A program made the position numbers and the translations under genes. This document shows positions 42,812-46,793 of a stretch of 64,000 nt of DNA, piece by piece; the stretch's first letter is position 1; each line of letters begins with the position of its first letter. The stretch lies in contig CM074820.1 of the NCBI GenBank assembly GCA_037447605.1, forward strand, positions 1,860,001 through 1,924,000, written 5' to 3'. Source of the stretch: Zygnema circumcarinatum SAG 698-1b. Taxonomy: Eukaryota; Plantae; Zygnematophyceae. The notes beneath the pieces were generated by a model, which worked only from the letters and a program-made list of their open reading frames with translations, did not search any database and was not told where the DNA came from.

Positions 42812-45800
42812 CTACTTCCTCATTTCTAGTCGGCAGAGGGCGCAGCCGAGGCAGAACTCCTGCCCGTTTGGAGGATGCGATATATGGAGGGGACAGTTCC
42901 GTGGTCCGTTACACTGAGGGAGAGGGCGCTTGTGCACGTCAGGGCGTGCCATGTGGCAAGTATTACAGAAATGCGTTGTACCGAAACAGAAGTAAGAGGC
43001 CACGGAACAGCAAAAGCGGCATTTGAATTCCACATATTTGTCTCCATGGCCTCTCACACATCGTCCGGCTCCAATACTCCGCGCTACGCAGGTACCGCAA
43101 ATTAGGGTTTCAGGGTTCAGGGCTTCTGCCCGTCTGGGTTGCTCGGGAAGGGGGGGTTCAGGGTTTAGGTTTCCGTTCAAGGGGTTGCGGGGAGCATGTC
43201 CGCCGCGGAATCGGAAGAGGTCGGAGAAGCGACGGACAGGTCGGTCTCTCTCTCTCTGCTCTCTCTCGTTGTTGATACCTTCCATTCTGCCAGCCAACCA
43301 TACTTGTGTTAGTCATGAACTTGGCTAAGATGTATGAGGAAGATGGTGATGATGATTGTGATGATGATGATGATGGTGGGATGATGATGGTGGTGGCGAT
43401 GCTGATGATGATGATGATGATGATGATGGTGATGGTGATGATGATGGTGGGTGATGATGATGGTGGTGACGATGATGATGATGATGATGATGATGATGGT
43501 GATGGTGATGGTGATGGTGATGGTGATGGTGATGGTGATGGTGATGGTGATGATGATGGTGGGTGATGATGATGGTGGTGACGATGATGATGATGATGAT
43601 GATGATGATGATGATGATGGTGATGGTGATGGTGATGGTGATGGTGATGGTGATGGTGATGGTGATGGTGATGGTGATGATGATGGTGATGGTGATGATG
43701 ATGGTGGTGATGATGATGATGATGGTGGGATGATGATGGTGGTGGCGATGCTGATGATGGTGATGGTGATGGTGATGGTGATGATGATGATGATGATGAT
43801 GGTGATGGTGATGGTGATGATGATGGTGGTGATGATGATAAACGATGACCGAGATGGATGTAAATGATGCTGATGATGATGATGATGATGATGATGATGA
43901 TGATGATGATGATGGTGATGGTGATGATGATGGTGGTGATGATGATAAACGATGACCGAGATGGATGTAAATGTTGATGATGATGATGATGTCCAATGAT
44001 GAAGGGGATGATGAAACAAGGTTCCCCACCTTTCGGCTGCCGGAGCACACTGTCGGTCGCCCCCAAAATAGGGTTCTCGACATTTCGAGCATTCATAGAA
44101 CATGAACCGCCGCAGTGCGAGCGCCTCTTCCCGTCCTTCATACGCTCCGCCTGCTTTGAGGTCAGCAGATGCTTCAAGGGAGCGGTCTGCTCGGAGCCTC
44201 TCTATGGCCATCTTCCGAACCTGCAATTTCCCATTAAGAGCAATACACTATGATTCATTCCTTCCAAGTTCCAACTGCTCTCTCTCCCTCCCTCCCTCCC
44301 TGCCTGCCTGCCTGCCTCAATTCTTCTCCATTTTTCCTCAAAAAAAGCCATCACCTTCACTTGATGTCTATTCGAATTCCAGAAAACGACCCACAACTCT
44401 GAAAACAAAAAAAAAACAATATGAAAAGACCAGGAATAGAACATGAAACATGGGCAACGAATTGAGAAGCATTACCTTAGTCTTAAGAGTGAGTGGCTGC
44501 GCCATACATTGTGATAAGGCGGGATGTTTCATTTCTGCTGCACATATCGGACACTGTAAAAAAGCAAAGGAGAGTTCCGGTCCTACACATCCGGTCCGAA
44601 CTTTAGTTACTGCACAGTTTCTATGGAGAATGTGACCACATGAGAGCTCAATAGAGGGCGAGTTCTTTAAGGGTTCGACCCAACAAATGGGGCAAAAATC
44701 GTCAGATGATGGTAGTTCCGTTGAACGGCCGTTCACATGTGAGCGTTGTTCACGACAGGGATCCTGGAAGGGCAGGATTGAGATACAGTGAGAGAGATGG
44801 AAATGAAAGGGTTTAAGGGAAAGGGCTCAGATGGGAGGAAGGTAAGAGTTTTGGGTAAGCTGGAAGTGTTTGAGAGTGGTTGGAAGGTTTTTCTTCTTTG
44901 TGGTATTAGGCTAGAGGTAGGTGAAACAGTGTCAAGAGACGGAGAGGCAGAGGAGGGAGAGGGCGAGAGGGAAGACAAGCAAAAGAGAGAGAAGGTGAAG
45001 GAGGAGAAGTGCAAGCAAGAGAGGAAGAAAGAGGATAAGGTGACGACAGAGCTAGACAGGGAGGGAGGTCAAGGAGGGAAAGGGAGGAGGAGAGGGAAGA
45101 GGCGGCGAACTGAGACTGGATACAGTGAGATGGAGAAAGCAAAGTAAGCGAAAAAGAGAGAGCTGAAGAGACAGAGGAGAGGGAGGCCGGAAGGCCGAGG
45201 GCCGGAAGGAGGGGGAGGCAGTGAGGGGGGGAGGGGGAAGGAGGGGGGGATAGAGATAGAGAGAAGGGGGGCGAGATAGAGAAAAGGAGAAAGAGTGCGA
45301 GAGAGAGAGATAGAGCGAGAGAGAGAGAGAGAGAGAGAGAGAGAGAGAGAGAGAGAGAGAGAGAGAGAGAGAGAGAGAGAGAGAGAGAGAGAGAGAGAGA
45401 GAGAGAGAGAGAGAGAGAGAGAGAGAGAGAGAGAGAGAGAGAGAGAGAGAGAGAGAGGCACCTCAAGGCAAGGCAGACATTTTCCCTCTCCTCGCACGCC
45501 TCCACATGGATGCCCACAATCGTGTACACGTGTGCAGCAGTTCCGTAGCTTCTTCATACAAACAGCCTCCCCACAAAGCATCTCCACCAAACCATATACT
45601 TTCCAGAGATCACTCTTCTCAATGCACCAGCTCAGGTCCACATTCAACTGCTCCAAATACCGCCTCAAATCATGCACTGTCCACGTGGCCTTCTCCTCTG
45701 CTGACAGCTGTCCCCTCGTCCTAGTGCTTCCGCAATATAAACAGCTTCCAGCCTCAGCTTCCGCCTGCTGTTCCTCACAAGTTTTTCCCAAATGATACGG

Positions 45801-46793
45801 AACTTTCCGGCAGTTTCCGCAGAAATTTTCTTTACACATAGCGCAGCGAAATCTGTGAATGAGACGGTGACAAAGGGCTTCTCGGGAGAGCAAACTTCCG
45901 TTACTATCAAGCTCTATGTATGGCACAGTTTTGTCGATCTCAGGTACTCCAGAAAGAGCAACTTCTTCAGGAACTTCTGAAGGGACCATCTCAACTGCAA
46001 TTCCGCAGCTCGGACAGGTCATCATGTCCATGTGGCTGTTCAGTACTGTGTCACTGAGTACGGACTCCCAGCGACGGAAAGCCTCCGGAGCGAGCTCCTG
46101 TGCTTGAAGAATGGGAAATTCCGCAGTGCAGCTCTCATCCGGACAGAGAAGCATAGTATCAAAGTCTTTCTCTCCCTGTTCTATGCGCGCAGTTATGCTG
46201 TTAAGTGCGTCTTCTACGAAGCTTCCCATGCAGGGCGAACAGAACAGGCAGGTGCATTTTGGCATGGGATATGACAGATCCAAGTCTCGGTTTTTGTGGC
46301 ATAAATGACATCGAAAAAACATGTCATCCGAGGCTTCAGAAATGCTCCCATTCCACCTCTCCTCTCCTCCTTCACGCTCTTGTAAAGAGACTGCAAAATC
46401 AATCCCTGAAGCTCGCCCGCGCTTCAAGGATGAAGAGCTCAAGGTCTGGGCTGCCTCTCCTGCTCCTCCTCCTCCTCCTCCCAAAAAGACGACATCCGAA
46501 TCGCAAGAGCTGGTCTCGTCCTCGTCATCAGAAAGGAGGATGTGGGTGGTGGCTGTTTGGCGGGAGGAGTCCGCAGGGAAGGAAAAGTGCTTGTTCTTGC
46601 AGGCAGGAGGGGGAGCGGGAGAGGCAGAGGGAGAACGAGAGGACGATGGACGGGGGGGAGGCTCAGCGAGGATGAATTCTACCGCCCAGTCTCCATCACT
46701 GTCCTGCTGCTCTCCACGCACAGCGCGGAGGAGGGCCGCCTGGTCCTTGTTCAGGAGGGAGGGATCGGAGACCTCCTCAAGGACAGGCTCCAT
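42812..46793 (-). CDS. E3 ubiquitin ligase: N-terminal RING/IBR-like Zn fingers plus MYCBP2/Highwire-type RING-H2 and tandem-cysteine (RING-Cys-relay) domain
   Basis: Exons 45462-46793, 44476-44763, 44030-44220, 42812-43286. Motifs [108 protein letters not shown]. Confidence 0.85.
43340..44012. repeat. Compound (GAT/GGTGAT)n microsatellite in intron 3 of the E3 gene
   Basis: Lies between GT donor 44029 and AG acceptor 43287. Confidence 0.9.
45299..45457. repeat. (GA)n microsatellite (intronic)
   Basis: Direct inspection. Confidence 0.95.

Follow-up and report, generated by a model that had tools for sequence, protein, structure and literature searches.

A compact candidate RING-Cys-relay ubiquitin ligase with an RBR-type RING1-IBR region in the streptophyte alga Zygnema circumcarinatum

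Whether the cysteine-relay chemistry of the animal ubiquitin ligase MYCBP2 has a counterpart in a green alga is the question raised by a minus-strand gene of Zygnema circumcarinatum SAG 698-1b. The gene lies at 42812–46793 of a 64,000-nucleotide stretch (NCBI GenBank assembly GCA_037447605.1, contig CM074820.1, positions 1,860,001 to 1,924,000 of the forward strand; hereafter the window, in which all coordinates are given) and had been singled out in a preliminary description of that stretch. In reviews, MYCBP2 is presented as the only RING-Cys-relay (RCR) ligase, an animal and mainly neuronal enzyme in which ubiquitin passes from the E2 to an upstream Cys and then to a downstream Cys, and is esterified to Thr in preference to Ser (PMC9527308, PMC9120709, PMC6769291). 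The Zygnema locus was read, with a probability of about 0.72, as an intact, expressed gene for a compact E3 ligase in which an RBR (RING-between-RING)-type RING1-IBR pair, a Cys/His finger, a RING, a linker and a tandem-cysteine (TC) domain follow one another, with a predicted relay mechanism.

The C-terminal RCR module

The coding region (42812–46793, minus strand) was modeled as 4 exons of 761 codons and a stop, running from an ATG at 46793 to a TAG at 42814–42812, and was colinear with its orthologues and with MYCBP2. Exon 1 (46793–45462; 444 codons) encoded an acidic motif, RING1, IBR, a CxxC, SAP-like helices and the Cys/His finger; exon 2 (44763–44476; 96 codons) the RCR RING domain, with Cys ligands spanning 44694–44542; exon 3 (44220–44030; 63 codons and 2 nt) the linker helix, a helix-turn-helix, the first TC zinc hairpin and the YFGGDRQC motif; and exon 4 (43286–42815; 1 nt and 157 codons) the mediator-loop insert and the remainder of the TC domain. 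The exon sum (444 + 96 + 63 + 1 + 157 = 761 residues) agreed with the preliminary estimate of about 760 residues for a protein compact beside animal MYCBP2 (>4000 residues), and all motifs quoted in that estimate were found in place on the minus strand. GT-AG borders were present in all introns. The exon 1 donor was the GT at 45461–45460, where phase 0 agreed with the orthologue alignment across the junction, and the exon 1/2 and 2/3 joints were placed by GT-AG sites, phase and gap-free orthologue alignment over the junctions. Sequence searches, fold comparisons and alignments were run with single exons or orthologues as input.

Exons 2, 3 and 4 were compared with PDB sequences (phmmer). Exon 2 matched residues 8–75 of chain 5o6c_A (E 7.6e-14), exon 3 matched residues 86–145 without gaps (E 2.6e-05) and exon 4 matched residues 147–258 (E 1.4e-25), in the order of the human MYCBP2 RCR crystal chains (5o6c/6t7f). 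Exon 2 also reached Pfam zf-RING_2 at 28.9 bits, above the cutoff, and other Pfam models as well; exons 3 and 4 matched 0 Pfam families, and no Pfam model detected the TC domain. The linker helix and helix-turn-helix between RING and TC were supported by the exon 3 alignment at the sequence level only. In an alignment with 16 family members, all conserved Cys/His columns of the RING and TC domains were occupied in the exons of the gene. The observed motifs and matches are far beyond chance, and these alignments establish the C-terminal half as a genuine homologue of the RCR module of MYCBP2, sharing with MYCBP2/Highwire/RPM-1 (PDB 5O6C, 6T7F) a colinear RING, linker helix and TC domain.

The upstream relay Cys (YFGGDRQC; codon 44047–44049, minus strand) was aligned to 5o6c_A chain position 143, equivalent to MYCBP2 C4520, for which C4520S is a published inactive mutant (PMC12664034). 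The downstream esterifying Cys (FCFG; codon 42986–42988, minus strand) was aligned to position 195 and was invariant in the family alignment. Both relay cysteines had been described beforehand as kept, and a failure to align with the catalytic residues of MYCBP2 had been named as grounds for abandoning the proposal; both do align. The His following CNTC (codon 42953–42955, minus strand) was aligned to chain position 206, and corresponds to the histidine described as general base in the MYCBP2 module (PMC6769291). The Glu of PETLIC was likewise kept in the family alignment. Two of the 3 phenylalanines that form the pocket for the methyl group of threonine were kept (FCF, HFC), and the third position was an Arg within an RPD motif (42938–42946, minus strand), where streptophytes carry xxRPD and animals DDF. 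The exchange concerns the choice of acceptor and not the assignment to the RCR modules. In MYCBP2 numbering, the 5O6C construct presumably starts at residue 4378, which gives C4520 and, for the FCFG Cys, C4572, consistent with the chain numbering; in this numbering the His is H4583, the PETLIC Glu E4534, and the pocket phenylalanines F4573, F4578 and F4586, the third being F4586. The relay cysteines, zinc ligands, catalytic His, 2 pocket phenylalanines and the finger upstream of the RING are thus shared with MYCBP2, from which the algal protein differs in its size, its mediator loop (68 residues vs 16), the exchange of the third pocket Phe for Arg and a SAP-like insert before the finger. It also lacks the RCC1-like, PHR, FBD1 (Fbxo45/FSN-1 binding) and Myc-binding regions of the PHR giants (PMC9120709), and carries a RING1-IBR pair instead.

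In the proposed mechanism, the exon-2 RING would bind E2~ubiquitin, and ubiquitin would be transthiolated to the Cys of YFGGDRQC on the flexible mediator loop and then relayed to the Cys of FCFG. With the neighboring His as general base, it would be passed to a substrate nucleophile, probably Ser/Thr or another hydroxyl. The N-terminal RING1-IBR would most likely serve as a second E2-/ubiquitin-binding or regulatory module. Ester-linked or threonine-directed ubiquitination by this protein is a prediction from its motifs.

The relay may be kept with an acceptor specificity unlike that of MYCBP2, the preferred acceptor being serine, lysine or a non-protein molecule that bears a hydroxyl or a phosphate. 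This was considered possible though unlikely, and was the strongest of the alternatives. The Phe cluster has been said to explain the threonine preference (PMC6769291); because one pocket Phe is replaced here by Arg, that preference is not assured, and the streptophyte xxRPD in place of the animal DDF after the catalytic His and the long, charged mediator loop were counted on the same side. Against an altered specificity, the catalytic His, 2 of 3 phenylalanines and the whole zinc scaffold are conserved.

The N-terminal RING1-IBR region and Cys/His finger

Exon 1 was aligned with orthologues, including those of Diphasiastrum and Ceratodon, at 35–40% identity. The RBR-type RING1 (CxxC...CxCxxCxxC...CPxxxC) was located at 46128–46310 (minus strand) by profile and fold matches, and the IBR at 45777–46016 (minus strand), with the pattern CPSC..RFRCxxCxxxFCxxCxxxPYHxGxTC and an insert of about 45 residues between its halves. 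Exon 1 alone gave only weak matches to the RNF144A RING1. A profile (A1), built from 20 orthologous N-terminal regions and compared with the PDB, returned RBR ligases in all of its top 10 places (RNF144A RING1, 5e-8; HOIP RING1, 1e-7; HOIL-1, 8e-7; ARIH2, 1e-5), and Pfam IBR was reached in 10 of the 20 aligned orthologues. An AlphaFold2 (AF2) model of exon-1 residues 150–444 (mean predicted local distance difference test score, pLDDT, 87.6) was searched with Foldseek, and the best 50 matches were all RBR ligases. By VIA-align, the model was superposed on 1wim (RNF144A RING1) with Z 10.3 and a root-mean-square deviation of 3.5 over 91 residues; RING1-IBR matches to ARIH2 (Z 9.7) and HOIL-1 (8.0) covered model residues 8–200, RNF216 gave Z 7.9, and the matches to ARIH2, HOIL-1, RNF216, HOIP and Parkin together spanned Z 6–9.7.

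By the agreement of profile, predicted fold, Foldseek and orthologue Pfam matches, the N-terminal region is a true RBR-type RING1-IBR, as its resemblance had first suggested. Its RING1 and IBR folds and Cys patterns are those of the RBR ligases (RNF144A, ARIH1/2, HOIL-1, HOIP, RNF216, Parkin), and a CxC variant of RING1 is common to the algal protein and RNF144A. No RING2/Rcat was found after the IBR: the post-IBR profile matched no PDB sequence at E<=10, and the approximately 100 post-IBR residues (AF2 pLDDT 89.8) matched nothing above Z 3.8 among 48,161 chains. The region was accordingly rejected as a degenerate RING2, on both sequence and fold. The protein is thus not an RBR ligase but carries the first two thirds of one; where RBR ligases have the RING2/Rcat catalytic Cys, it has a different finger and the RCR module. 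The RBR-like/RCR hybrid of the preliminary description stands as a RING1-IBR joined to an RCR module, and falls short of a complete RBR set.

Between the IBR and the finger, a SAP-like helix pair (WC-EK-DL; 45597–45683, minus strand) gave a weak match to Pfam SAP_RNF34_RFFL (E 0.1) and weak SAP/LEM fold matches (Z <=3.5). The short helix pair and its WC-EK-(D/E)L signature recall the SAP domain of RNF34/RFFL (CARP); the match lies far below threshold and the algal element sits inside the zinc-finger region, so that this is a resemblance only. The helix pair was present in the aligned Viridiplantae members and absent from the protist and animal rows.

The Cys/His finger (C..C...C...; 45468–45575, minus strand) is common to animal MYCBP2, where it stands directly upstream of the RING. 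Residues 4300–4430 of an animal MYCBP2-like protein (P0101, 4673 residues) were used as query, and residues 65–105 of that segment matched the finger with 54% identity over 41 residues (BLASTP, E 2e-14). The columns of the CxxC and of the finger Cys/His residues were invariant in 26 compact and giant members, and no solved structure matched the finger by PDB sequence profile or fold comparison. Because the finger is shared, homology to MYCBP2 extends 41 residues upstream of the crystallized module.

At the N-terminus, the acidic motif QDSDGDW...ILAEPPP (46653–46706, minus strand) was found in the same place in P0001–P0004, P0009, P0012, P0030 and P0162. The motif (QDSDGDW..F.LA[ED]PPP) was conserved from prasinophyte-like metagenomic members to ferns, corresponded to no known domain and may serve in docking.

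The presence of a RING1-IBR allows the protein to be read as an RBR-like ligase in which RING1-IBR docks E2~ubiquitin, the TC domain replaces RING2, and the exon-2 RING is structural or regulatory. RING1 domains of RBR ligases favor transthiolation, and the RING1-IBR has been kept with the RCR part across 4 supergroups. This working was nevertheless held improbable: no part of the protein is closer to the E2-binding RING of MYCBP2 than the exon-2 RING, which retains all its ligands, animal MYCBP2 works without a RING1-IBR, and neither sequence nor fold comparison found an Rcat-like element.

The mediator loop and the transcript

Counted between the upstream Cys and the zinc Cys that follows it, the mediator loop was 68 residues long, against 16 in MYCBP2 and a family median of 17 (n = 89 members with both motifs). 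It contained an insert of about 50 residues (43136–43285, minus strand) that was charged, Pro-rich and not alignable to MYCBP2. Inserts were found at the same loop site in Closterium (50 residues), P0100 (48), P0025 (86) and P0017 (94), with shorter ones in Chara and Volvox. Because inserts recur there, the site tolerates changes of length, as expected of a flexible tether.

RNA contigs from the same organism were compared over 42600–43330 only. In 4 runs from 4 studies, a contig spanned 42600–43288 without an internal joint and continued as the reverse complement of the exon 3 end, which placed the exon 3/exon 4 joint at donor 44030|44029 and acceptor 43287|43286. Intron 3 (43287–44029, minus strand; nearly all CAT/CAC/ATC microsatellite) was skipped in these contigs, unspliced contigs extending into it were found in 3 of the 4 runs, and the gene was present in 7 runs under the same organism label. 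Because spliced contigs cross the joint, the gene is transcribed and the mediator-loop insert, with no internal splice in the contigs of the 4 runs, is part of the mRNA. The joint was the one drawn in the preliminary description, and the long insertion noted there at the start of exon 4 was confirmed as coding sequence carried in the mRNA.

Splicing at an alternative acceptor, 43133, would preserve the phase and yield a 17-residue, MYCBP2-like loop, and the polypyrimidine tract of this site is good; it was rejected as the main form, the contigs of the 4 runs being unbroken from 42600 to 43288. A minor short-loop isoform spliced at 43133 may exist and is compatible with the contig data.

A telomere-like repeat of 17 nt occurs twice in the exon 4 insert, at 43105–43121 and 43153–43169, 48 nt apart (plus strand, GGGTTTCAGGGTTCAGG and GGGGTTCAGGGTTTAGG). 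In the read comparison, short pieces of another transcript with GGGTTTAGGGTTTAG were also matched at the repeat site. The repeat may hint at the origin of the insert, or be chance.

The protein could also be a relative that is dead or decaying as a catalyst, its relay disabled by the insert, and retained for binding only; this was held slightly less probable again than an RBR-like working. The mediator-loop insert of some 50 residues would fit such a protein, as would a recent, sloppy origin of the insert, at which the two-copy repeat hints. Decay is contradicted by an intact reading frame with every catalytic and zinc residue conserved, by expression and splicing of the gene, and by the inserts of other members at the same site, as for a flexible loop.

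The reading of the gene as an intact, expressed relay ligase was preferred over these alternatives, and several points weigh against it. The exon 1/2 and 2/3 junctions are based on homology and GT-AG sites, read support being confined to the exon 3/exon 4 joint. The IBR of the gene itself stays below the Pfam threshold, a weak SAP match being the only Pfam match of exon 1. The mediator loop has 4 times the usual length and could alter or slow the relay. With the third pocket Phe changed to Arg in streptophytes, the acceptor preference may differ from that of MYCBP2. Finally, no paper characterizing any compact family member biochemically was found in the literature.

The compact family and its origin

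Exon 4 was used in an exhaustive phmmer search, which returned 1008 clusters at E<=1e-3, of which 507 reached E<=1e-10. Many of the TC clusters were 500–1200 residues long with the TC domain at the extreme C-terminus, and at least 43 retrieved proteins additionally carried the IBR motif and the CGH finger. Members were found in streptophyte algae (Chara braunii, Closterium, Mesostigma), a moss (Ceratodon), lycophytes (Selaginella, Diphasiastrum), ferns (Ceratopteris, Adiantum, Pteridium), chlorophytes/prasinophytes (Bryopsis, Volvox africanus, Chlamydomonas sp. UWO241, Cymbomonas), diplonemids (Namystynia, Diplonema), stramenopiles (Blastocystis, Platysulcus) and dictyostelids (Dictyostelium discoideum, D. 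citrinum, Polysphondylium), the motifs being verified in the dictyostelids. RING1-IBR was conserved alongside the RCR part across 4 eukaryotic supergroups, whereas in the animal giants a B-box-like finger occupies the upstream region. The compact homologues (Dictyostelium DDB_G0284853; Polysphondylium; Selaginella, Ceratodon, Chara, Closterium) share with the Zygnema protein the RING1-IBR-finger-RING-TC order and the catalytic motifs; the Zygnema protein differs in having the SAP-like insert and the RPD motif of streptophytes, and its mediator loop is among the longest.

In the orthologue of Closterium sp. NIES-65 (P0030, 919 residues), the mediator loop, the linker and the stretch ahead of the RING all carried long Ala/Gly-rich inserts. 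A protein of Closterium sp. Naga37s-1 (P0185) was, at 1702 residues, almost twice as long as P0030 and may be a gene-model fusion.

A plant-lineage speciality, as first supposed, does not fit this distribution, since the family occurs in Amoebozoa, stramenopiles and diplonemids besides Viridiplantae; the companion suggestion that similar proteins may exist in protists was borne out by the diplonemid, stramenopile and dictyostelid members. Word-indexed searches, a method that is not exhaustive, returned no seed-plant member when algal, moss and fern proteins served as queries, which agrees with the earlier remark that the enzyme was not known from angiosperm models. On these searches a loss in seed plants is likely. 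Orthologues that were already ubiquitous and characterized in land plants had been named beforehand as an argument against the proposal; they are present in mosses, lycophytes and ferns, as uncharacterized proteins.

Names assigned automatically in databases included 'E3 ubiquitin-protein ligase MYCBP2' (JGI) and 'RCR-type E3 ubiquitin transferase' (UniRef, Polysphondylium), so that the homology was already visible to annotation pipelines; land-plant members were named 'hypothetical' or 'RING-type domain-containing'. Literature searches with sufficiently specific terms brought up no work on RCR ligases of plants or algae, and a 2019 paper mentioned Dictyostelium DDB_G0284853 in passing as a 'mycBP2/Highwire-like protein' (PMC6743453). 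Neither the architecture (RING1-IBR, finger and RCR module) nor its broad occurrence nor its apparent lack in seed plants seems to have been described.

In a tree built on 106 columns of the TC region, and hence of limited power, animals, dictyostelids, diplonemids, stramenopiles, chlorophytes and land plants formed separate groups, and the Zygnema gene paired with Closterium (support 91/90). Vertical inheritance fits, because the tree follows taxonomy; the family is old, vertically inherited and eukaryote-wide, and animal MYCBP2 shares the finger-RING-TC part only. Foreign DNA, whether by contamination or by recent transfer from an animal or protist, has nothing in its favor beyond the resemblance to an animal protein and can be dismissed, since the full-length relatives that match best belong to land plants and charophytes, the TC tree places the gene with Closterium and apart from land plants, chlorophytes, amoebozoans and animals, the SAP-like insert is common to the Viridiplantae members, the introns carry CT and CAT microsatellites typical of this genome, and the gene occurs in all 7 runs mentioned above.

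It is tentatively proposed, at somewhat less than even odds, that the compact RING1-IBR-finger-RING-TC protein is the ancestral form of RCR ligases. It would be older than the divergence of Amoebozoa, Archaeplastida, stramenopiles and Euglenozoa and have arisen from an RBR-like ancestor in which RING2 was replaced; animal MYCBP2 would be a derived giant whose RING1-IBR was lost, and the enzyme would have disappeared altogether from seed plants. If so, Cys-relay ester ubiquitination would be an ancient eukaryotic chemistry and not an animal neuronal speciality, with small, tractable members in mosses, Dictyostelium and algae.

For the Zygnema gene itself, the same catalytic module, with relay cysteines and His intact, is expressed in a streptophyte alga near land plants, in a family that offers versions of 600–900 residues of an enzyme whose 0.5 MDa otherwise makes it difficult to work with. 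Throughout the compact family, which covers at least 4 eukaryotic supergroups, an RBR-type RING1-IBR stands ahead of the module. The gene suggests that the RBR and RCR classes are linked in evolution. From the family, non-lysine (ester-linked) ubiquitination is predicted for algae and non-seed plants, with an apparent loss in seed plants, and natural experiments are available in mediator-loop length (12 to about 94 residues) and in the threonine pocket (Phe vs Arg).

Microsatellite sequence surrounds and interrupts the gene. Intron 1 contains a long (CT)n array at 45317–45457, and a CT-rich frame upstream of the ATG (46800–47290) is open and encodes proline and serine. Together these give a false open reading frame (ORF) of 739 residues that lengthens exon 1 at both ends and was rejected as microsatellite read-through, not coding. 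An ORF of 305 residues at 43309–44226, in frame with exon 3, was likewise rejected as His/Ile/Thr/Ser-rich microsatellite read-through of intron 3; it could mislead gene finders. An assembly gap (a run of N) lies at about 48400, approximately 1.6 kb upstream of the gene. Farther upstream, a large minus-strand ORF at 51563–52726 encodes a Glu/Gly-rich repeat and closes with a motif that resembles the RRM of ESF2/ABT1-type ribosome-biogenesis proteins; it is probably the next gene.

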